This document shows positions 1-62,791 of a stretch of 64,000 bases of DNA, in pieces. Under the pieces are notes generated by a model. The model was given only the letters and a program-made list of their open reading frames with translations. It was not told the DNA's origin and did no database searches. The stretch's first letter is position 1. Each line of letters starts with the position of its first letter. The position numbers were made by a program, and so were the translations under genes. The stretch is from the sequence record NC_048077.1. The stretch is one strand, 5' to 3'.

Positions 1-1631
1 ACGCCTTTGCTCATCGTCCAGATAGCATTATTTGGATTGTTTGGATCATCAACAGACAAACAGTTGTACGGAACAGAAAAATCTTGCACATTTAATTTTG
101 GAGGTTGAATTGGACACCAGACGAAATAACTCCAATCACATCCAATACCACTCGTTACGCGTACCGTGATATTGCTACGGAGAACGTGTTCCGGATACTT
201 CCAGAATTCGAGTGTTCCAGATTGTCCAGCCAGAAGATTTTCAGTATCGAGCAGATTCATTTCCTGATCGAAAACTTCAAACTTCGTATCGAAACTTCCG
301 GCACGCACATCAACTAAGCCTGCGCGAATATCCGTTTGTGTTCCCAATGCGAAGTTATCTTCTGTAGTCGGATGGCCTGCGCTCACTACCCAATCATACT
401 GACAAGGGAAACGATATTCGCGTGCGCCTCGTTCGTTCGGACAATACAGAGAATAGTAGAAGCTATTAATAGAATTATTTTTCCCGAAATCTTTCGCCAC
501 AACTCTGACCATAAGATCGAAGTTTTGTGTGCCAGTCGGATCATAATAAAAATAAAGATAGCCACGACCAGTTTGTGCTTCTTGCGTTGACGCAATTCGT
601 CGGCCTGCATGATAAACTTCGATGTAATCTAAGTTATCCCATGACGTATAGTTGAGATAAGTCCAACCAACGTTATTGCCGATGTAGTGATAATATTCAA
701 AAGCATTACTATCGACGATACGATCAACAATAGGCCAAACAGTTGCGTGACACGGCGCAGGAAAAATAGGAGTGCCGATATATTCAGGAACAATAACATC
801 CGGATAAGTTAAAACATCATATGCCGCTTGACTATCCAGCGCTAAGTTTGCGCGGTCAGTAGTTGCATTGAGTTTTGGCGGTATAACCTGCAAACTCCAG
901 TTCGCACCTTGAGAAGTACGAACACGAATCATGATACGCATATCTTCCGCATCAGGATCGTTAAGGAATTTAATTCGACCGCGACCGCCAACTTTTCCAC
1001 ACGTAGACGCAACGCGAATTCCTTCGGCGTAAACATCCACACTTAAACCGTCTGCATGATAACTTGCGAAAGTTATTTCAACATAACCTTCTTGTCGTGG
1101 AATTGCGAAAATTGTTTCAGTGATTTGTGCGCCGCGAGAATGCACGGAAGCCCACGGCACGTTAGGGTTCGTCCACGTTCCTAAACCTGCTTGCGAGGCA
1201 AGACCCGTTGGATCGTAACTTTCAATTGTTCTTATTCCCGGTCGAGTAATATAACGCGACGTAGGAGGAACGTTGCCAATCCCCACACCGAAACCAGTTC
1301 GCGCAGCATCCGGTAAATCATATCCAGCAGGATAACCTTTTAACGGATCATATTTAGCACCACGCGAACCGTCGCCAGTACCGGAACCTTTTGTGGTGGA
1401 AGTTGGAGCACCACCACAATTTCCGATTTCCTGATTGATACATGGATCATCAAAGTTAGGATCAAACTCTGCATCAATATCGTACCAGCGTTTTCCATGC
1501 AAACCGCGAACAGAAAAAGTATCGACTGTTAATGGTTGCCACGTATTTTCTTTTGTTCGAATGAACATCGGAGTATCCGCGCAATCGTACCAGCCGTTGT
1601 TTTCTAAATTTCTTACGCGAAAACGAGGCAT
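1..1631 (-). CDS. Virion adhesin/fibre-tip-like protein, partial (runs off window start), three tandem beta-sandwich-like domains
   Basis: Hand translation from ATG at 1631 (MPRFRVRNLENNGWYDC...) stays open to position 1 (>543 aa). It is absent from the ORF track because it has no stop in the window. It follows the collagen genes; repeated segments VYAEGIRVASTCGKVGGRGRIKF / VYHAGRRIASTQEAQTGRGYLYF. Confidence 0.8.
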   Translation of the reverse strand, partial: MPRFRVRNLENNGWYDCADTPMFIRTKENTWQPLTVDTFSVRGLHGKRWYDIDAEFDPNFDDPCINQEIGNCGGAPTSTTKGSGTGDGSRGAKYDPLKGYPAGYDLPDAARTGFGVGIGNVPPTSRYITRPGIRTIESYDPTGLASQAGLGTWTNPNVPWASVHSRGAQITETIFAIPRQEGYVEITFASYHADGLSVDVYAEGIRVASTCGKVGGRGRIKFLNDPDAEDMRIMIRVRTSQGANWSLQVIPPKLNATTDRANLALDSQAAYDVLTYPDVIVPEYIGTPIFPAPCHATVWPIVDRIVDSNAFEYYHYIGNNVGWTYLNYTSWDNLDYIEVYHAGRRIASTQEAQTGRGYLYFYYDPTGTQNFDLMVRVVAKDFGKNNSINSFYYSLYCPNERGAREYRFPCQYDWVVSAGHPTTEDNFALGTQTDIRAGLVDVRAGSFDTKFEVFDQEMNLLDTENLLAGQSGTLEFWKYPEHVLRSNITVRVTSGIGCDWSYFVWCPIQPPKLNVQDFSVPYNCLSVDDPNNPNNAIWTMSKG

Positions 1632-2794: not shown

Positions 2795-3769
2795 CTACTT
2801 AGGATTTCGCGCAGTGATTCGAATCGTTGAACGAACAGTTGCAGTCGGACGTGAACTTTGCCCCATATCCATAACAACGCAAGTTAACGTTGCAGTAAGA
2901 GATAAAGTTTTTCCTTGATCAACTTTTCCGTTAAAAATAATCTGAACAATCCTATCAGTGTTGCCTTTGATGTTTAAATCTTTTGCGTCACTGATTGTCC
3001 ATTTATACGAATAGTTTCCGGTGCCACCACGCACGTTTACAGGCAGATAAGCCTGCGCGAAGAACAAGTCATTGCCAGCAACCACGCGGGTTGCAACGAG
3101 ATCCACATTAGATACAGAAGCACCAATAGAAGGAACGGAAGGAAGTGCAGGAATTGGATTTGTTGTTGCAATTGGAAAACACCATGCGAAAACAGTTTTA
3201 TTTGTTGGCGGTGCATTTCCACCACTAACAACAACAGTTGTAGTTGGTGCAGGGCCAGTTGGGCCAGTTGCGCCACTAATACAACTTGGTCCATCTTCTC
3301 CCGCTGGACCATCAGGGCCAGTTGGGCCAGTTGCGCCAGTTGGTCCTTGCGGCCCATCATTTCCGCGAGGGCCGGGATAACCATCATCGCCATCTGGTCC
3401 ATCTAATCCATCATTTCCTGCTTGTCCTGTTTTTCCTTTTAAACCGCGCTCGCCAGTATTTCCACGCGGGCCAGTATTTCCATCACGTCCGTTTCTTCCG
3501 TTTCTTCCCGGTTTTCCCGGAGCACCTTTTCCGCCCGGTAAACCTTCGCCAAATAAACTAACAGTAGGAAGACCTGAAATAGTTATGATCTTCCCACTGC
3601 GTTTTATGATCACCAAATTTCCTTTGGTATTATCATATTTAATATCGGCGATCTGAGTGTTTGCGAGTGCATCTGTATCTACGAATTCCAGTTCACTACC
3701 GCCAACAATTTCTTTGCCATCTTGCTCGCCGGAAGTTTTGATCTGTTCTAATCGTAGAGTGTTACTCAT
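2795..3769 (-). CDS. Collagen-like fibre protein with C-terminal beta-rich domain
   Basis: GXY tract followed by a beta-rich domain ([15 protein letters not shown]) typical of fibre tips. Confidence 0.9.
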
Positions 3770-6087
3770 CGCGGTTCCACCTTAATACAAAGATTAGCAA
3801 TAAGTTTTGATGCGTAGTTTCCGATCATCGCATTGCTGATACGCATTTTCGCAACGATCTCAACATAACCTGCCGGATGATTATCGCGAATCAAATCGTA
3901 CATTTGCGTAATGCTTGCGTTCCCATAAGCAATAGATTCCGTGCTGTTTGGGTTCACAACTGCAAGGCCAGCAGCACCAGTACCTTTCACGCCACGCCCG
4001 TATTCAGGAGCATCAGAACCCGGAGAAGCAGAAGCAAGAACAAACTCGATATGCTCGTTACCAATTGCAACAGCAAAACCTGGCCCTAACTGCGCCTGAA
4101 AATCAGCAGTAGCAGTAATCACAACGCCTTTATTGAATTCGATGCGCTGACGAATAATGATCTCTTCGCTATCCTCAACACGGTTTTGAATGTTGAAAAT
4201 TGCTTTCGGATCTTCTGCCTCTGCCATTGCCGCAATGGAATGAATTTTAACGAAAGGCCAAACGCCTTCAATTTTAATTCCTTTCCCGGCGATGATATCA
4301 GGAGTAAACAGCGGAACACTTAACGGAGTCATGCCCTGACGTTTGAACATGTATCCGGTAGGAGTTGCAATCACATCAACGATAACGCCTTCGATGTTTG
4401 TGTCTTTGCTGCCAACACTTTTAACGTTTTCGAAAATCGTGAATTCAACAGTTGTGTTTGCTTTTACCTGAGTTGAAAAACGAATCGTGCTTCCAACCAG
4501 AGTAAAATCAGAAGTGTGCGCAGGCAAACCACCCATGTTCGCAATTACGTGCGCTTTGTTCAGCGGAGTAATTGGAAGCTCAAACGTATCCGTCGCGTAA
4601 GGAAGTTTGAAAGTTGCAACGCGAATACGAGTAGACCATCCGGCACGTTCTTCGTAGCGTGCAGCATACAACGAAACTTTATGACCGCTAGGAATACTGT
4701 CTACAAATTTCAAACGGTTTCCGTTATTCAATTTATAAACGGTAGTCGGTTGCCACGTATTTCCAACAACAGCGAACACATGATCCGCATCATCGACAGG
4801 AGCGTTGCCAAGTTTAAAATCACTCGTCTGCCCGTCGCCAGTAAAGTCATACGCTTCGAAAAGAACAACGTGACCTTGCGACGGTTCCAAACGGAATTGG
4901 CGTAAATCCAGAGTCATTGCGTTAGGCAAGTTTTCTGAAAGTGCCATTTCTTTTTTGCGAACTTCGTATGCGGTGCGCGGCTGCAATACGCCACTGGTGC
5001 CAAGCAATAAATCCGTTGCGCTGTCCAATTCTTCGGAAAGAGCATAAGTGATTGCGTCAGTGGAACCAGTCGTTACGAGAGAACTAAACAGAAGTTTTCC
5101 CGGAGGCGTAAAAAGCGTTGCAGTAGTTTGTCTGTTACCGCCTGCGATTGGCCCCCAATAAAGTTTATTTCCTTCACCGCGAAATAAAGCCCATGCAGCG
5201 GGAACATCGTTATCTTCCGGCCACGGAATACCAGCAGTCGGAACAATCGGATTCACAATGCGCTTCCACACTGCGATTGTTGTTGCGCTACTGATAAACG
5301 GAATCGCTTTATCCTGATTGATCAGTTGTCCGTTGCGATATTTGAAATGACGACACGCGCCAGCACCGGGGCCACTGATAGTCTGAACTAACACAATTTC
5401 ATCTTGCGCCAGTTTCAAACTTGTATTGAAAGTATTTGCGTTAATAAAATCAGCGCCGATTACTTTTGACAGCACGCGATCATGCTCGCCGAATCCCCAA
5501 TTATAACCACCGGGGCCATAACGGAATGCAGTACCGGGAGAACGAGAACCGTCACTATTCACATGCAAATCGAGAACAGAAACCGCGTTAAAATGATTGT
5601 CATTAGAGGCTGGCAAATTCTCAAGCGTTGCAACAGACGGAATAGTTGCATAGTCATACATCGTCACATCAAGAATTCGTTGAATGTCTTGCTTTAAGTG
5701 AACGAGTAAACTGATTCGCGCTGCGCTGTTTGGAACCACCATGATCGGATTAGAAAGCACAACATGCCCGAAGGCACGATTGTCTTCGAGCATGATGAGA
5801 ATTTCACCGATTGATTTAATCTCTTCGTTGTTTTTGTAATCCAGCGAAACATCGAAAACAAAACGCGCGGAGTTTTCACTTTCCACCTGAACAAAAGAAA
5901 GTTGTCCGGAAGCAAGCTCGTTTCCTAAAAGCTGCGAAGGTACTGCGCTAGGCTGAGAACCAGTAAAATCGCCGACTTTAAAAGCGACAGGTTTTACTAC
6001 AATTCCACCTGCGTTGGCGGTAGAGACTGCTTGTTCCCCGACAGACGTTAGCCGAAGCGCATCAACATAAATTGCTTGTGATGCCAT
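3766..6087 (-). CDS. Baseplate/tail-fibre attachment protein (tail-collar fibre-like N-terminus)
   Basis: N-terminal LTSVGEQAV...G..VKPVAFKVGD resembles P2 gpH-type fibre N-termini; repeated GDGQTSDF-type beta modules; baseplate context. Confidence 0.65.
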   Translation of the reverse strand: MASQAIYVDALRLTSVGEQAVSTANAGGIVVKPVAFKVGDFTGSQPSAVPSQLLGNELASGQLSFVQVESENSARFVFDVSLDYKNNEEIKSIGEILIMLEDNRAFGHVVLSNPIMVVPNSAARISLLVHLKQDIQRILDVTMYDYATIPSVATLENLPASNDNHFNAVSVLDLHVNSDGSRSPGTAFRYGPGGYNWGFGEHDRVLSKVIGADFINANTFNTSLKLAQDEIVLVQTISGPGAGACRHFKYRNGQLINQDKAIPFISSATTIAVWKRIVNPIVPTAGIPWPEDNDVPAAWALFRGEGNKLYWGPIAGGNRQTTATLFTPPGKLLFSSLVTTGSTDAITYALSEELDSATDLLLGTSGVLQPRTAYEVRKKEMALSENLPNAMTLDLRQFRLEPSQGHVVLFEAYDFTGDGQTSDFKLGNAPVDDADHVFAVVGNTWQPTTVYKLNNGNRLKFVDSIPSGHKVSLYAARYEERAGWSTRIRVATFKLPYATDTFELPITPLNKAHVIANMGGLPAHTSDFTLVGSTIRFSTQVKANTTVEFTIFENVKSVGSKDTNIEGVIVDVIATPTGYMFKRQGMTPLSVPLFTPDIIAGKGIKIEGVWPFVKIHSIAAMAEAEDPKAIFNIQNRVEDSEEIIIRQRIEFNKGVVITATADFQAQLGPGFAVAIGNEHIEFVLASASPGSDAPEYGRGVKGTGAAGLAVVNPNSTESIAYGNASITQMYDLIRDNHPAGYVEIVAKMRISNAMIGNYASKLIANLCIKVEPR

Positions 6088-6115
6088 TCTTATTACTCCT
6101 TTGGTTTAGTCCTTT

Positions 6116-6125
6116 AAAATTAGTG
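6116..6125 (-). promoter_or_regulatory. Candidate late-promoter motif CACTAATTTT
   Basis: Same C(A/G)NTAATTT core recurs about 20-40 nt upstream of several structural gene starts. Confidence 0.4.
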
Positions 6126-6137
6126 TAATGCGAAATA

Positions 6138-6168
6138 GAAAAGAAAAAGGCCGCCAAAAGGCAGCCTT
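6138..6168 (-). terminator. Rho-independent terminator
   Basis: Minus-strand AAGGCTGCC-TTTT-GGCGGCCTT followed by TTTCTTTT, just after the stop of 6175..7245. Confidence 0.8.
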
Positions 6169-6174
6169 AAAGTT

Positions 6175-13972: not shown

Positions 13973-13998
13973 TAGATTTTCTCCTTTTATTACTGGTT

Positions 13999-14007
13999 AA
14001 ATTAGTG
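13999..14007 (-). promoter_or_regulatory. Candidate late-promoter motif CACTAATTT
   Basis: 27 nt upstream of the PAAR start, directly after a terminator. Confidence 0.4.
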
Positions 14008-14010
14008 GCA

Positions 14011-14046
14011 GAAACAAAAACGGGCAGCACAAAGGCCACCCGTTTT
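14011..14046 (-). terminator. Rho-independent terminator
   Basis: Minus-strand AAAACGGGTGGC-loop-GCTGCCCGTTTTTGTTTC. Confidence 0.8.
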
Positions 14047-14049
14047 CGT

Positions 14050-14500
14050 ATCAAATTTTTCATGCGGAGTTAAAAGTTGGACGCGCATAACCTCTATAGA
14101 ATAACGGCGCAGCAATCGGTTTATAGCGCTGGCAAAGAGTGTTCGCCCAATCGCATCCAATCTACACGCCGCGCCATTTGGAGAGGCGCACAAAATCCCA
14201 CGTCTGAAATTTTGCTGTCCATAGTATACGCGGAGTTACCCGCAAGGCATCGCAATCAAATCTGAATTTTCGGCAAGAAAGTGTCGCTGTCTAACACATC
14301 CCTCGAACGTGCGCTTTGCCGTAAGCCACGGCGTAGCCAGACGCGAGCGCTTTCGGCTTGCTCGCACATTGTTTTTCAATGCCTAATCTTACTCCTTGCC
14401 AAAGCAAGATTAGTAGCGACATAAGGAGGATGAGATCTTTCACTCTGAATGTTTCCTTACGTCTATTGTGACACGGTGCCACAAATTCTTTTTACAGATT
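14050..14500. ncRNA. Candidate structured RNA (multibranch) or structured small-peptide mRNA
   Basis: Closing helix 14281-14289/14414-14422 encloses four hairpins; more hairpins at 14171-14189 and 14230-14243; no convincing long ORF; ends at a minus-strand terminator. Confidence 0.4.
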
Positions 14501-14664
14501 AGCCACCATAGAACCAATCATTCATTTTTATTTTCCTTACCGCAATCCATAATCCACGAACGTAATTCTTCGCGAGACATTTTAGAAGGCGGTGTAAAAG
14601 TTTTGGAGTTAAGCGCTCTATCCATCCGGTCGATATCAATCAGAACGACCGGATCTACAAGCGC

Positions 14665-14976
14665 TCATTTTTCACTTGCACGCATCATGCAGTCTTGCGC
14701 TTCGAGAAGTTTGCGAAGTCCCGCACTCTTCTCTGCGCTGTCAGAAATTTCTGCATCAAGCGTTTCTGCGATATGGCGAAAACATCCGGCGATTCCCATC
14801 TTTTTAAGATCGCCAGTGAACCGCTCAGGATCGAAGTAGTTCATAATCGGATTGGAATATTCTTTTTTACCGCCGCCCCAATCGCCGATTTCTTTAGGGC
14901 CACACATTCCAGTCACACCCGGAGTCTTACTCGGATGATCTTTATTATCGGTTATATCAATGCGTCTTTCCGACAT
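14665..14976 (-). CDS. Small conserved phage protein, helical-hairpin C-terminus (EKSAGLRKLLEAQDCMMRA); possible Acb2/Tad1-like sponge
   Basis: RBS AAGGA upstream; the C-terminal motif is one I recognise from a widespread small phage/bacterial protein family. The sponge link is inference. Confidence 0.7.
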   Translation of the reverse strand: MSERRIDITDNKDHPSKTPGVTGMCGPKEIGDWGGGKKEYSNPIMNYFDPERFTGDLKKMGIAGCFRHIAETLDAEISDSAEKSAGLRKLLEAQDCMMRASEK

Positions 14977-14989
14977 TTCATTTGTTCCT

Positions 14990-15710
14990 TTTCAGTAGGT
15001 AACATCCTGCATTACGCTGTTAAGGGCAACGTAATGCAAGTTGTCTTCCCAACTTTCCCGACAAAAGATTTTCATTTCGCTTCCCGTTTCCCAACTAAAA
15101 CAGGTCTAAGCGAAAACTATCTTCGAAGCCTCGCAGGAGGTCTTGCAAATACGCGATGGACGGCGTAGGCAATTTACGATCTTCGGTCTGCGGCAGTTAT
15201 TTGTTAATCATCTTTCGATGACAAGAATAGGTCGTGAATTAGCTACCCACACTTTAAACTTCCTGCTAACTAAGATTCGAATACGGAAGTACCGCACGGG
15301 ATATTCGAATCTAAATCCTCGTTTTGGACGATTGGCAACAGCCTGCTTGATAGCACCACCCACATGCACCGCTATCGGTATATTCACTTTACAGATTTTA
15401 AAATGAACATACAGAACCGATGAAAAAGATTTCCCGTTTATGCCCTCATACGAAAACATAAACGGCATTCTTTCTTGCTGTCTGCAACAAATCGGTTTCT
15501 CTGTCTGGAAGAGAAAGAGCGATTTTCGTTTCCCCCTGTTAGGAGCGGCTTGGGAGCCTACAAGTGAAACGGCTGCCAGTGTTATATCCCCACTTTACAG
15601 ATTCGTCCTCCCGCAAAAGAACTTTATGAATCCAACTGGCTAGGGTCTAAAGACAAGGCGGGGAAAAAGTAAAACCGCCTTGCCCTAATTAATTACTATT
15701 TACAGATTTA
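14990..15710. ncRNA. Candidate large structured non-coding element (~700 nt; ncRNA or replication origin)
   Basis: At least eight inverted repeats of 6-11 bp, three copies of TTTACAGATT, and no credible ORF in an otherwise gene-dense window. Confidence 0.45.
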
Positions 15711-15712
15711 CC

Positions 15713-17491
15713 TTAGAAAATTTTACGCTTAACCAGAGAATAATAAACTTCGAACGGAGCACCATACAAAGCTGGCCCGCGTTGAGCACGCGCTGTCACT
15801 TTGCCTGTATGAATGTTCAACGCAGTGATTTCTACCGTTGGCTGTTTCGGTCGAATAGTTTCATACACCGGAGTGTTGAATGTCGGATAATCATTGCGTA
15901 AACGTTCGATACTTTCTTCCGCTTCTTTCGACGGCTGCGGGAATTTAAAACGAATCTCAGCAGCACGTTTACCGCGAGCGATAGTCACATAACCTTTCTT
16001 CAAAGGCACGCCGTTATACATCAGATAGGAAGAAATACGACGAGCGATACCGACCACCTGATCGTAAATCGTATCATCCATTACCTGCGCAGAAAAACGA
16101 ATGCCAGTAGGTTGCTGTACCATTGCCAGACGCAAACCAGTGTTGAAATAACCTTCGTCAATCAGGCGACGGAAATAATCATACATCGCTTCTGTTTTGG
16201 AGGCGATAGCCGGAATGTGCAACGGCGGAACGTCAGCTTTCGGTTCAACAAAAGTTGGAGTCTGAACCGGAATAGACATTTTCACAACCTGCGAAACTTT
16301 ATAAGTGTTTTCCAGAATCGGAGTTGTTTTGATCACAACTTTATTCTTGATTGCTTTCTTATAGTTTTCGTCAGTTGTCAGTGAGGTAAACAGACGATAA
16401 TCAACCGGGCTTGTATAGCCGCTAATGATATCGCGCACCAGCGTTTGAAGTTTTGCCTGCGTGTCAGCGAACACAACGCGACTGCGATTAGGCGTGCTCG
16501 GAGATACCGGGAAGAATGCACCGTAAACAGTTTTGATATTGCGCGGTGAACCTGTTCCAGTAACCTTAGTTGCGTTTTCCAGTTTCGGAAGTTTTTCAGC
16601 CTGACCAACAGGCGCAACTTTCGGTGTACTGCGAATCGCTTTACCTTTAACGTAACTCGTCGCTTCCGGATCAACAGACAGATTACTCAGCAGATTTTTA
16701 ACTGCCGAACTATCCATCCAACTCTCAATCGGAACTGCGAGGTTGTGTGCGAGGTAATGTTTCTTGCGGCGCATCAAAACAACAGTGCCTTTCGGAATAA
16801 CAGGCGACAGAATTTTTTTCTTCGTTGTTCCGATATACGCGAACGTATCAGTTTTCAGATCGGACACTTGACCGAATGGAGCGGTGAATTCAAGAGCGCC
16901 CATAATGCTTTGCGCTGTTTCGTGACCGCGAACAATAAACTGAATGCGCGGGCTATCTTTCAGACGCAGATCGTAACGGTCTTTGTTGAGATAGGTAATC
17001 TTAATCAGATCGCCTTTCTCAAGTTCTAGATCGTATTCATCGGAAGCGTCATCAATAGCCAGTTTCTTGCCCGTGTATTTGAGATACTTAGGTGCCGCAC
17101 TTTCAGAACTAACATCCAACACATCAAAAACACGTTGCGAATTTTCAGCGTACTCACGCGCCGCCTGCATTGCAGTGGCGAGGTTAAAGCTGATAGATTT
17201 TTCTTTCGGTGGAACTAACTGAACATGAACGCTACTACTCGCACTCATGAAAACAGTTTGATTATCGTCGCGAGTTCCAGCGAAGTGCATTCCAGTAAGG
17301 CGCTCTACAGCGTCAGCACTAATGCTTTCGTGTGCGATACGATCACCGGGAACAATCTCAGTGATTTCGCCACGGTGCCAAACATAGGCAGCGCGTCCAT
17401 TGTGACCAATAAAGTGATCGCCCACTTTAGAGATTGACCGTGGGATAATCCCTAAGTCAGAAATAACGCGAGAAGGTTTTTGAACAATCAT
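15713..17491 (-). CDS. Hypothetical head-associated protein (paralogous Y-x-x-Y-x-G domain; several S-x-S motifs)
   Basis: 592 aa; N-terminal region has SIS three times and SESA; the following domain aligns by eye with 30097..30765 and 47720..49651. Confidence 0.7.
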   Translation of the reverse strand: MIVQKPSRVISDLGIIPRSISKVGDHFIGHNGRAAYVWHRGEITEIVPGDRIAHESISADAVERLTGMHFAGTRDDNQTVFMSASSSVHVQLVPPKEKSISFNLATAMQAAREYAENSQRVFDVLDVSSESAAPKYLKYTGKKLAIDDASDEYDLELEKGDLIKITYLNKDRYDLRLKDSPRIQFIVRGHETAQSIMGALEFTAPFGQVSDLKTDTFAYIGTTKKKILSPVIPKGTVVLMRRKKHYLAHNLAVPIESWMDSSAVKNLLSNLSVDPEATSYVKGKAIRSTPKVAPVGQAEKLPKLENATKVTGTGSPRNIKTVYGAFFPVSPSTPNRSRVVFADTQAKLQTLVRDIISGYTSPVDYRLFTSLTTDENYKKAIKNKVVIKTTPILENTYKVSQVVKMSIPVQTPTFVEPKADVPPLHIPAIASKTEAMYDYFRRLIDEGYFNTGLRLAMVQQPTGIRFSAQVMDDTIYDQVVGIARRISSYLMYNGVPLKKGYVTIARGKRAAEIRFKFPQPSKEAEESIERLRNDYPTFNTPVYETIRPKQPTVEITALNIHTGKVTARAQRGPALYGAPFEVYYSLVKRKIF

Positions 17492-34089: not shown

Positions 34090-34109
34090 ATGAATTTTTC
34101 CGAAGCAGA

Positions 34110-34138
34110 AACAAAAAAGGAGGCCAAAAGGCCCCCTT
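34110..34138 (-). terminator. Rho-independent terminator
   Basis: Minus-strand AAGGGGGCC-TTTT-GGCCTCCTTTTTTGTTTC. Confidence 0.85.
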
Positions 34139-34160
34139 AGTTTTACCCGCAGAGGGGCAT

Positions 34161-53673: not shown

Positions 53674-53694
53674 TTTCTTTCCTCAAGCGTCAGA

Positions 53695-53719
53695 AACAAA
53701 AAATGGGGCCGAAGCCCCA
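53695..53719 (-). terminator. Rho-independent terminator (UUCG loop)
   Basis: Minus-strand TGGGGCTTCGGCCCCA-TTTTTTGTTTC. Confidence 0.85.
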
Positions 53720-53734
53720 CGATTTTACACGCGA

Positions 53735-62710: not shown

Positions 62711-62731
62711 TTCTCCTTATTAGGACTAATG

Positions 62732-62741
62732 AAAATTATTG
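62732..62741 (-). promoter_or_regulatory. Candidate late-promoter motif CAATAATTTT
   Basis: 22 nt upstream of sheath 2, directly after a terminator. Confidence 0.35.
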
Positions 62742-62751
62742 AGATCGCAGT

Positions 62752-62787
62752 AGAAATGAAAAAGGGCAGCATATTTGCCACCCTTTT
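62752..62787 (-). terminator. Rho-independent terminator
   Basis: Minus-strand AAAAGGGTGGCA-AATA-TGCTGCCCTTTTTCATTTC. Confidence 0.8.
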
Positions 62788-62791
62788 AGGA

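Follow-up and report, generated by a model that had tools for sequence, protein, structure and literature searches.

The described RNA closest to the one examined here is Proteo-phage-1 (Rfam RF03044), an 82-nt motif without known function that was reported by Weinberg et al. 2017 (PMC5737381). Rfam files it as an sRNA gene, and our literature search found no paper text that mentions Proteo-phage-1. The put RNAs of phage HK022, which are about 70 nt long and consist of two stem-loops, are to our knowledge the only phage RNA-only antiterminator class so far, and they clearly differ in size and architecture from the array reported here. The known RNA antiterminators (put and EAR) are single and smaller, and we know of no tandem arrays of either. 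ROOL, GOLLD and the stable RNAs of the T4 tRNA cluster (species 1 and 2) are large, ornate phage RNAs, also without known function, that are often found beside tRNA genes.

The locus studied here lies in a 64-kb stretch of DNA (64,000 nt, the window) that is 100% identical to Dickeya phage vB_DsoM_JA33/JA11; JA33 is a virulent 255-kb jumbo phage, and its local genes are on the minus strand. Between the stop codon of a 592-aa gene (15713) and the start of JA33_103 (14976) there is an unannotated gap of 736 nt (14977-15712) without a conserved ORF, which bears out the preliminary description of a non-coding block of some 700 nt. The longest ORFs in the gap encode 86, 87 and 67 aa, and in phage JA29, which has an extra 270 nt inside the block according to pairwise alignment, no ORF of at least 35 aa was found at the matching positions. 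A coding reading was rejected because these ORFs are unconserved. Other intergenic gaps in the window are short, at about 60-90 nt, as had been noted, but the block does not interrupt a virion module as was thought; it is found between a nucleotide-metabolism cluster and baseplate genes. The poorly annotated region is wider than the block (13973-15712), with small conserved ORFs in its lower half. JA33_103 matches PHROG 5120 and 1761, neither with an assigned function, and its homologues come after the RNA in locus L010, Yoloswag, and SNU5. The sole strong intrinsic terminator of the region (14009-14045) is located about 35 nt ahead of a PAAR gene and has an equivalent at the same place in every jumbo relative. 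ARAGORN found no tRNA or tmRNA, with no tRNA near the block in JA33, and Rfam models detected no introns, riboswitches or ribozymes. In BLASTN searches, the block beyond the PAAR gene matched JA-type phages only.

Taken together with its relatives, the block is very probably the template of a minus-strand, multi-domain structured RNA with two full units and the stump of a third, belonging to a class related to Proteo-phage-1. The features of the locus, in the direction of the genes, are:

15690-15709, minus strand: conserved motif AAATCTGTAAATAGTAATTA, directly 3' of the stop codon of the 592-aa gene
15650-15686, minus strand: 12-bp hairpin GGGCAAGGCGG.../...CCGCCUUGUC, in both the minimum-free-energy and centroid folds
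15568-15645, minus strand: 5' domain of unit 1, CCCUAGCC ... GGGAUAUAACACUGGCAGCC, with helix GCCAGU/ACUGGC, from the RF03044 alignment
15421-15567, minus strand: 3' half of unit 1, from compensatory pairs in RNAalifold
15315-15420, minus strand: remnant of the middle unit, with AAUCUGUAAAGUG and UAGCGGUG kept, from the JA33/JA29 alignment
15183-15314, minus strand: 5' domain of unit 3, with 11-bp hairpin AGAUUCGAAUA/UAUUCGAAUCU, stem verified
15036-15162, minus strand: 3' half of unit 3, with Pa, Pb (AAGAU/AUCUU), Pc and C (GUUG-GGAAGA-CAAC), from model R3
15071-15124, minus strand: M2 (= Pc) hairpin, from model R1
15001-15046, minus strand: terminal hairpin with conserved GCCCUUAAC loop, 9-bp stem verified and compensatory pairs counted
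14665-14976, minus strand: JA33_103, 103-aa ORF 3' of the RNA, annotated in the record
14009-14045, minus strand: intrinsic terminator AAACGGGUGGCC...UGCUGCCCGUUU + UUGUUUCUG, ending the unit of RNA and small ORFs

The dense base pairing that first drew attention to the block exceeds that of shuffled sequences, and more so on the minus strand (-237.6 kcal/mol, z = -3.7) than on the plus strand (-199.3 kcal/mol, z = -2.8). Although the orientation had been left open, the RNA can be assigned to the minus strand, which folds 38 kcal/mol better and is the strand of the genes. The six stems for which paired coordinates were originally listed all show perfect or near-perfect complementarity: five consist of Watson-Crick pairs only (9/9, 11/11, 6/6, 9/9 and 6/6), while 15171-80/15231-40 has eight Watson-Crick and two G-T pairs. 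In the minimum-free-energy fold, 15475-90 and 15496-516 likewise form hairpins, but what was described as a three-way junction (15641-87) is just one hairpin of 12 bp. The GGGAA repeats noted at 15045-15095 are present, but they are the 3' strands of two conserved hairpins. Conservation of the block between JA33 and JA29 at least equals that of the flanking genes: its two alignable parts are 91.6% and 88.3% identical, compared to 82.5% for the 592-aa gene and 79.8% for the 103-aa ORF. Covariation in related phages, which the preliminary description had named as its own test, gave a positive result: compensatory changes were found in 20 of 70 RNAalifold pairs in the unit 1 region of four phages, and in 17 of 80 pairs in a further consensus that included the 5' domain of unit 3. 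Both consensus folds contain many G.U pairs, and the conserved U.G pairs require a single RNA strand. The suggestion of a structured non-coding RNA therefore stands, in that the block is a large, densely structured and conserved non-coding RNA element rather than a decayed gene.

No direct Rfam match was obtained at curated thresholds: RF03044 gave nothing on JA33 at the gathering threshold across the whole window, or at E <= 10 in 14800-15900. When 106 nt were searched alone, RF03044 aligned over model positions 1-82 to 15571-15645 on the minus strand with 14.3 bits (E = 1.4), against a gathering threshold of 42 bits; canonical RF03044 loci score 70-82 bits, and the relatives L026 and L028 score 47-50 bits, with matches 50-130 nt upstream of M2. 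The terminal segments of the motif, 5' CCccaGCC and 3' AAaAACaCCGGCAGCC about 80 nt apart, are present in JA33, where CCCUAGCC ... GGGAUAUAACACUGGCAGCC fall on model positions 1-8 and 61-82, and ends of this type also occur in JA29, L009, L010, and L027. In the array the terminal motifs (CCCUAGCC ... AACAC-GGCAGCC) span 75-78 nt, compared to 82 nt in the model. The internal hairpins of RF03044 (a CCAGG/CCUGG stem and a second hairpin) were not found in JA33, and the model pairs are skipped; unlike in the model, the ends pair together, such that the three nucleotides after AGC pair with the three before GCA, with six different complementary triplets across the units compared.

The link to Proteo-phage-1 extends beyond these ends. 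All 15 canonical RF03044 loci carry a 117-nt 3' extension comprising Pa, Pb/Pc and a C hairpin with a GGAAAGAC loop, and 12 of its 32 pairs are compensatory among these loci. A covariance model built only on this canonical extension (R2) finds M2-type units, and R3, iterated from R2, matches JA33 15036-15162 on the minus strand along its full length (model 1-117, 37.3 bits, E = 7.8e-6), so that unit 3 contains the extension with Pa, Pb/Pc (AGA bulge, ANNNGG loop) and a GGAAGAC hairpin. On this basis, the 3' half of unit 3 is homologous to the canonical extension. The full RNA measures about 200 nt, of which the 82 nt of RF03044 make up the first third; the rest (Pa, Pb/Pc, C) is now defined with covariation support. 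Proteobacterial phages carry both the array and canonical Proteo-phage-1 on the coding strand and between operons, but the array has two to three tandem copies in a virulent jumbo phage, whereas canonical copies are single and in temperate lambdoid phages. The proposal of a novel family consequently holds only with respect to direct matches at curated thresholds; because the JA33 RNA joins RF03044 through intermediates, it represents an already described family, in a highly divergent form arranged in tandem. Weighing against the family assignment, as well as against a role in cis, are that R3 does not detect unit 1, that the Rfam score is 14 bits and that Alexandravirus members have no M2 hairpin recognisable by R1 or R3.

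The complete units, about 200-290 nt long in this class, occupy 15421-15645 and 15036-15314. The 5' domain of a unit contains both terminal Proteo-phage-1 motifs (CCCUAGCC... and ...AUAACnnnGCAGCC) and is closed by a helix that covaries in 11 of 12 units (CAG/CUG, UAG/CUA, CGG/CCG, AGG/CCU, GGA/UCC, GGU/GCC); at prophage locus L027 the motif reads GGGAUAUAACACCGGCAGC. The 3' half consists of hairpin Pa, helix Pb around hairpin Pc (AGA bulge, A-N-N-N-G-G loop) and hairpin C (GGAAGAC loop). In unit 1 this half is composed of small hairpins, a long hairpin with a UCCAGAC loop that replaces Pc, the C element GCAGACAGC-GAAAGA, and hairpin CCGUUUAUG/CAUAAACGG; R3 did not detect it in JA33, and the orthologous stretches of L009 and L010 score weakly (E = 0.09 and 0.83). 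Close relatives have three units, compared to two and a remnant in JA33, where the middle unit lacks about 270 nt, including the Pc hairpin, that are retained in JA29, L009 and L010. The number of M2 hairpins is one in JA33, two in JA29, and three in L010. In unit 3, the loop of the 11-bp hairpin (CCC-GU-GCGGU-ACUUCC) is complementary to downstream GGAAGU and to UGCCGC of AAAUAACUGCCGCAGACC, pairings that would form a pseudoknot. RNAalifold predicts both GCGGU/GCCGC and ACUUCC/GGAAGU, the latter compensated in L009 as ACUUUC/GAAAGU. The GCCCUUAAC loop of the terminal hairpin is carried by a different stem in Alexandra, AD1 and SNU35; downstream of the hairpin come GCAGGAUG and then the ribosome-binding site that serves the 103-aa ORF.

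The M2 hairpin consists of a variable P1, a 5' AGA bulge, P2 (CCUGUUUU/GAAACGGG) with an invariant U.G, and an AGUUGG loop. R1 detects it in JA33 with 59 bits (E = 2e-13) as the sole copy in the 64-kb window. Among 20 copies, 87.5% of cells are paired compared to 65% in shuffles, and the covariation score is 0.61 compared to 0.20 in shuffles; 0 of 500 shuffles reach 0.61, and the slid controls stay at or below 0.19. All eight pairs of P1 covary, and the U.G pair is present in 19 of the 20 hairpins. A pattern of M2 plus GCWGAC retrieved only prophage L028 (again as L056 and L060) and chance matches from genome and metagenome collections, and BLASTN found no match among GenBank phages for the temperate RNA regions of L027 and L028.

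Three other interpretations suggested by short motifs were rejected. A sponge of the CsrB/RsmB type, binding CsrA, was considered for the GGGAA repeats, which are stem strands of Pc and C; temperate and canonical homologues carry GGGC or GGGU there, and there is no Rfam match. M2 has a GTTT...GAAAC-like appearance reminiscent of a CRISPR repeat or RNA anti-CRISPR, but its copies are 300 nt apart and form a covarying hairpin inside a larger fold, and the element is presumably unlike the type I-E or I-F repeats of Enterobacterales. Mimicry of ToxI (UUUAAAGUG...GCUAAUUC) was dismissed because only the first part is conserved among relatives.

All related jumbo phage genera examined have an ORF-free block at this position. 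It follows the 590-aa gene in Salmondvirus, Alexandravirus, Sasquatchvirus, Yoloswagvirus and Rivsvirus, and in Yersinia phage fHe-Yen9-02. A clade of Dickeya, Erwinia, and Yersinia jumbo phages carries two to three very divergent tandem copies at a fixed position. Every jumbo relative has the AAATCTGTAAATAGTAATTA motif where its block begins. The motif may act as a promoter or operator; alternatively, it may supply the 5' side of a long-range helix whose other strand would be UUGCAGA (about 15486-15492), and RNAalifold pairs UCUGU with GCAGA. The 15650-15686 hairpin ends the upstream gene in the manner of a weak terminator, and L010 has the same hairpin with a different sequence. In Yoloswag and SNU5 its equivalent is a full, strong intrinsic terminator before the conserved start motif, suggesting a separate transcription unit with the RNA at its head.

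Of the five ATCTGTAAA copies that the 64-kb window contains, four are in the block region, all on the minus strand, against an expectation of 0.7 window-wide. This clustering could point to an element that acts as DNA, such as an origin of replication, a site for packaging or clustered protein-binding operators, in which the hairpins would be incidental or act as single-stranded DNA. The motif lies within an imperfect palindrome (TCTGTAA-N-TTGCAGA) in Alexandra and Y3, the GenBank record of fHe-Yen9-02 begins and ends inside the block, and the unit of L052 adjoins iterons, an AT-rich stretch and a replication-initiator gene. We nevertheless regard this explanation as very unlikely. Cumulative GC skew is monotonic through the locus, without an inflection (GC 0.45), and JA33 has no regular iterons or AT-rich unwinding element, which together with the need of U.G pairs for one RNA strand argues against the origin proposed in the preliminary description; the iterons of L052 are a separate element downstream of the RNA. 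Moreover, the helices covary as their sequence changes, and a conserved U.G would be a C.A mismatch on the other strand, a pattern not expected of a protein-binding site in duplex DNA. The RNA 5' domains enclose two of the four ATCTGTAAA copies, and the carriers have unrelated replication systems. General phage promoters were also rejected as an explanation for ATCTGTAAA, TGTAAATA and CTAATTTA, which are not enriched elsewhere in the window.

Canonical RNAs are found in Pseudomonas lambdoid phages between the Q-position gene and holin, endolysin or terminase genes, where they head the late lysis/packaging operon. They begin about 6-20 nt past the upstream stop codon or terminator and are directly followed by a terminator or tRNA: an intrinsic terminator occurs within about 10-15 nt of the folded domain of about 200 nt in six of the 11 canonical loci inspected for it, and a tRNA gene starts about 10 nt past the RNA in five of 15. 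This slot recalls that of the lambda PR'-tR' leader ("6S RNA") and the StxS sRNA of Stx phages, as do the terminator ends and the tRNA genes that sometimes lie in between. However, an elaborate conserved fold is absent from the lambda leader, Q works via a DNA site and the JA33 copy is outside a lambdoid genome. Elsewhere, the RNA lies between a CI-like repressor and early-left recombination genes (L027) or just upstream of replication genes (L028, L052). The Q-position/late, early-left and pre-replication slots are the three classical antitermination positions of lambdoid phages, and the canonical and temperate copies match them. No protein neighbour common to all carriers was found, and the Q position is held by three unrelated protein families, without Pfam matches, so a host partner fits better than a phage partner.

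The fold-then-terminator arrangement of those six loci, upstream of late genes, is also the classical layout of a riboswitch or attenuator, and tandem aptamers are known among riboswitches. Aptamer-like units might therefore sense a ligand or factor and gate the following terminator and thereby the downstream operon. We consider such an attenuator improbable: the units of JA33, L052 and the tRNA-linked canonical loci have no terminator directly beside them, a convincing alternative antiterminator pairing was not seen, and the downstream genes differ (lysis, replication, recombination, baseplate), leaving it without a metabolic logic.

Our first choice of function, which we hold tentatively, is a leader RNA that acts in cis on host RNA polymerase. 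The group with JA11, Y3 and Alexandra was described in an analysis of PaBG as using host RNA polymerase with phage sigma factors (PMC7412058). From the observed strand, structure, modular homology, synteny and head-of-operon position in relatives, we infer transcription itself, the RNA ends, contact with the polymerase and the effect on termination. Host RNA polymerase would transcribe the RNA as the leader of a unit that takes in the small ORFs, reaches the 14009-14045 terminator and continues into the PAAR and baseplate genes. Every unit would fold during synthesis, and the folded RNA would remain on the elongating polymerase in the manner of HK022 put RNA, making it resistant to downstream intrinsic terminators; tandem units would increase the fraction of modified polymerases. 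As with putL and putR, the RNA heads phage operons, placed between a promoter and the terminators that follow, with no dedicated phage protein apparent, and the one piece of machinery that all carriers share is host RNA polymerase. It probably shares neither sequence nor structure with put, and it differs from put in its tandem organization as well as in size and architecture. Hairpin + TTTTTGTTTCTG terminators of the same kind as that at 14009-14045 also occur upstream of the block (34090-34160, 53674-53734 and 62711-62791), beyond the reach of an RNA acting in cis, so the phage must handle those another way.

Almost as likely as a cis-acting leader is a stable RNA acting in trans, with units matured from the operon transcript or kept as a concatemer that could bind, titrate or scaffold a conserved host component, and with tandem copies giving dose or valency, as in the stable phage RNAs ROOL/GOLLD and those of the T4 tRNA cluster. 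Canonical units have discrete ends, with the 3' end at a terminator or about 10 nt before a tRNA, where RNase P would make the end and cut the RNA off the nascent transcript; a released stable RNA fits this tRNA adjacency better than a tethered antiterminator. In L023 and L053 a tRNA is found about 300 nt downstream. The Rfam listing as an sRNA gene, arrays of two to three units maintained across jumbo genera, and the finding that no phage protein co-varies with the RNA would also agree with a role in trans, and many invariant unpaired nucleotides suggest a compact fold or protein-binding surface. Against this, same-strand protein ORFs follow the jumbo array before any terminator, so that it must serve as an mRNA leader too, CsrA-type GGA motifs are unconserved in temperate homologues, and the RNA gave no Rfam match to CsrB/Rsm, 6S, ROOL or GOLLD. 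ROOL, GOLLD, OLE, HEARO and raiA gave no match at E <= 10 in 14800-15900, and none at the gathering threshold in 13 related loci. The unit differs from ROOL and GOLLD in its smaller size (about 200 nt), in its proteobacterial hosts and in that no tRNA is near the JA33 block. A released stable RNA would join them as a large phage RNA awaiting its function.

If the RNA instead modifies RNA polymerase, as in the cis-acting reading we favor, it would be a second phage RNA-only antiterminator class. It is conceivable, though we put this below an even chance, that the full-length Proteo-phage-1 RNA represents a widespread new class of protein-independent processive antiterminators, or RNA-polymerase-binding RNAs, in phages of Proteobacteria, found in lambdoid PL, PR, and PR' leaders and, in the jumbo clade, as tandem arrays heading baseplate and tail genes. 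The question can now be addressed through read-through of a defined terminator with host RNA polymerase. Several phage records contain spurious ORFs over the RNA, and their annotation can be improved accordingly.

The window is identical (100%) to Dickeya phage vB_DsoM_JA33/JA11 (Salmondvirus, 255 kb), and the genes surrounding the ORF-free block all lie on the minus strand. Positions within the block are given as x, the distance in bases from the 592-aa stop codon, read on the gene strand (window coordinate = 15713 - x). In gene-strand order, the locus reads as follows:

Before the 592-aa gene, minus strand: genes for a NUDIX hydrolase, an MmcB-like nuclease, a dTMP kinase and a 146-aa protein
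15713-17491, minus strand: 592-aa protein gene, with KMPT-N as its sole Pfam match
14977-15712, minus strand: ORF-free block, between the 592-aa gene and JA33_103
14665-14976, minus strand: JA33_103, a 103-aa ORF
13973-14664, minus strand: second poorly annotated stretch, 3' of JA33_103
3' of that stretch, minus strand: PAAR spike gene, then baseplate genes

The 592-aa protein belongs to PHROG 32352, and its KMPT-N domain (residues 135-194) is of a type described in phage "polyvalent" conflict proteins. All jumbo relatives conserve it 5' of the RNA, and in each one examined (JA29, L009, L010, Alexandra, Y3, Yersinia phage fHe-Yen9-02, Yoloswag, AD1, SNUABM_5 and SNUABM_35) the 590-aa gene is followed by an ORF-free block of 620-1250 nt. 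In the IMG/VR contigs L009 and L010 this protein is 68-69% identical to that of JA33 and the block DNA ~67%, while across other jumbo genera the protein shares just 40-47% identity. BLASTN of the block between jumbo genera found no similarity, and despite this background the blocks share short conserved islands. Comparison of JA33 with its relatives revealed no conserved ORF in the block, and a 270-nt insertion in JA29 falls within its 86-aa ORF, in keeping with the non-coding status proposed in the preliminary description. The lower gap (13973-14664) holds small conserved ORFs absent from the record's annotation; the truly non-coding part is the block, not this gap. Because JA33/JA29 identity is higher in the alignable block parts (91.6% and 88.3%) than in the 592-aa gene (82.5%) and the 103-aa ORF (79.8%), constraint on the block is at least that on coding sequence.

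All stems listed in the preliminary description are present, and both strands fold more stably than shuffled sequences (minus, -237.6 kcal/mol, z = -3.7; plus, -199.3 kcal/mol, z = -2.8). On the gene strand, the block comprises:

x = 4-23, minus strand: conserved start motif
x = 27-63, minus strand: hairpin after the start motif
x = 66-292, minus strand: unit 1, with a Proteo-phage-1-like 5' domain
x = 293-398, minus strand: unit 2 remnant, lacking 270 nt retained in JA29, L009 and L010
x = 399-677, minus strand: unit 3, with a 5' domain and complete 3' half
Block end, minus strand: terminal hairpin with GCCCUUAAC loop

The helix closing the 5' domains pairs three bases 3' of AGC with three bases 5' of GCA, and six complementary triplets occur across 11 of 12 units, including those of Alexandravirus. 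RNAalifold on JA33, JA29, L009 and L010 found compensatory changes at 20 of 70 pairs in unit 1 and 17 of 80 in unit 3, whose 5' domain probably forms a pseudoknot. Unit 1 carries a different long hairpin at the position expected for the Pc hairpin (M2), followed by a C element (GCAGACAGC-GAAAGA) and a closing hairpin. GCAGGAUG (15005-15012, minus strand; x ~701-708), which matches the CsrA SELEX core CAGGAUG well, follows the terminal hairpin and precedes the 103-aa ORF's ribosome-binding site; it is kept in JA29 and L009, while L010 has GGGAUG and Alexandra AAUGGAGUG.

The M2 hairpin has a 27-nt conserved core (UAGACCUG...GGGAAACGGGA), present in 1-3 copies per phage, that folds into P1, an AGA bulge, P2 and a six-base A-N-N-N-G-G loop. 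Among 20 copies, 87.5% of cells were paired (65% in shuffles), and the covariation score was 0.61 against 0.20; 0 of 500 shuffles reached 0.61, and slid controls gave at most 0.19. All eight P1 pairs vary on both sides. Covariation in related phages, here and in units 1 and 3, supports the fold. One U.G pair is retained in 19 of 20 copies and would be a C.A mismatch on the other strand; the gene strand is therefore the RNA strand. The preliminary description had seen GU pairs on both strands and left orientation open, which this pair settles as minus. The pair also argues for RNA as opposed to duplex DNA, and since GC skew is flat and the wobble pairs are strand-specific, a DNA-level element, including the replication origin suggested earlier, is very improbable. 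A covariance model of M2 (R1) found a single copy in the 64-kb window (15071-15124, 59 bits) and no M2 in Alexandravirus loci. Alexandravirus phages instead have two copies (minus strand; in Alexandra, L003, at ~5780-5860 and ~5395-5440) of another 27-nt core, AUACUCAAGUG..GUUGGGCGACGAG, closed by covarying stems, which looks like a lineage-specific Pc replacement.

Direct Rfam search and ARAGORN returned nothing in the block, consistent with the earlier failure to name a family, but a distant match emerged through other loci. Scanning IMG/VR with the M2 pattern yielded genuine hairpins from contigs of unrelated phages (L023/L053, L026, L027, L028 and L052), and in L026 and L028 RF03044 (Proteo-phage-1) matched above the Rfam threshold 50-130 nt 5' of M2. 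The RF03044 consensus ends (CCccaGCC... and ...AAaAACaCCGGCAGCC) are also those of JA33 x = 68-145 (CCCUAGCC ... AUAACACUGGCAGCC); on this stretch alone the Rfam model aligned end to end at 14.3 bits, against a 42-bit threshold. A second scan gave 15 canonical RF03044 RNAs (70-82 bits), all with 117 conserved nt 3' of the Rfam motif. This extension contains stem Pa, helix Pb around Pc, and hairpin C with a GGAAAGAC loop; Pc has the AGA bulge and A-N-N-N-G-G loop of M2, and 12 of 32 RNAalifold pairs are compensatory. A model trained on canonical extensions only (R2) matched L052 (3e-7), L023 (1e-5), L026 (2e-5), L027 (2e-4) and the Yersinia jumbo phage (0.04), with M2 aligned to Pc. After one iteration (R3), the whole model matched JA33 at 15036-15162 (minus strand; 37.3 bits, E = 7.8e-6), as well as JA29, L009, L010, Yoloswag, SNUABM_5 and both Yersinia units. 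These E-values are approximate, as calibrations were shortened; both the full-length alignments and, independently, R1 agree with them. The JA33 RNA belongs, distantly, to RF03044. What is new is how far this RNA really extends, its covariation-supported Pc/M2 and C elements, the placement of canonical copies in the late leader, and the tandem, highly divergent jumbo-phage form.

Canonical loci read NinG, a ~200-aa Q-position protein, the RNA, an intrinsic terminator or (after ~10 nt) a tRNA gene and then a terminator, holin/endolysin and terminase, an order also found in the isolated Pseudomonas phages phiAH14a and Solano. In lambda, this position is that of the PR'-tR' leader. The Q-position proteins fall into at least three unrelated families, and no neighbour protein is common to canonical and M2-type or jumbo loci. 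In L027 the RNA has a CI-like repressor on one side and an exonuclease/RecT operon on the other; in L028 and L052 it lies directly 5' of replication-initiator genes. The L052 copy adjoins iterons: 5-6 copies of a ~22-nt repeat (GTATCGACTAAGGATTCCTGCT) and an AT-rich stretch (~3560-3900; 470-810 of the printed region) separate RNA and initiator gene, and by its sequence this region is a textbook origin directly 3' of the RNA. Same-strand tRNA genes follow the RNA by ~10 nt in L088 (7005-7078), L124 (2165-2238), L170 (2862-3008), L179 and L141, and by ~300 nt in L053 (13033-13106), a proximity to tRNAs reminiscent of ROOL and GOLLD. The antisense gp55 annotated over the RNA in phiAH14a (L187, 3265-3795) and seven 30-63-aa ORFs annotated over those of fHe-Yen9-02 (L005 5263-5968, L006 146-573) are probably spurious; the latter record both starts and ends within the RNA block.

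Two readings of function stand close together. Ranked first, tentatively, is a cis-acting leader RNA that would modify host RNA polymerase. Wherever flanks were examined, the RNA has the same orientation as a long operon 3' of it; it lacks a dedicated protein partner, and in temperate phages it sits at the three classical antitermination positions of lambdoid phages. Terminators lie 3' of it, and in Yoloswag and SNUABM_5 one precedes the conserved start motif; in JA33, however, terminators of the same type also occur 5' of the block, beyond the RNA's reach. All carriers require host RNA polymerase, a dependence reported in the PaBG analysis for the group including JA11, Y3 and Alexandra (PMC7412058). 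Close behind, a stable RNA released to act in trans is possible, given the tRNA genes abutting five canonical copies, the discrete unit ends and the tandem arrays retained in jumbo phages. A sensing attenuator seems unlikely.

Terminator-like elements recur between JA33 genes (6088-6174, 14009-14045, 34090-34160, 53674-53734 and 62711-62791, all minus strand), each a G+C-rich hairpin followed by TTTTT(G/C)(T/A)TTTCT(G/A). Genes often start 20-50 nt beyond, too short for a classical promoter, and read-through of these terminators seems routine. An unannotated small ORF (...IDIDRMDRALNSKTFTPPSKMSREELRSWI...; 14518-14625, minus strand, context 14499-14664), with an uncertain start codon in JA33, has clear homologues in the corresponding position of L009, L010, fHe-Yen9-02, Yoloswag and SNUABM_5. 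At 14291-14422 (minus strand), directly 5' of the terminator in all genera, lies a short hydrophobic-peptide ORF (MSLLILLWQG...) with a good ribosome-binding site in Alexandra and Y3 and CCUCCU before the ATG in JA33; its DNA forms a covarying hairpin around UUGCUUGG, so the stretch could encode a peptide, act as an RNA element, or do both. Within the 103-aa ORF, 14689-14744 (minus strand) shares 84% DNA identity with a hypothetical gene of Erwinia phage pEa_SNUABM_30 and, because that gene sits at a different genome position, this small ORF family appears mobile within these genomes.
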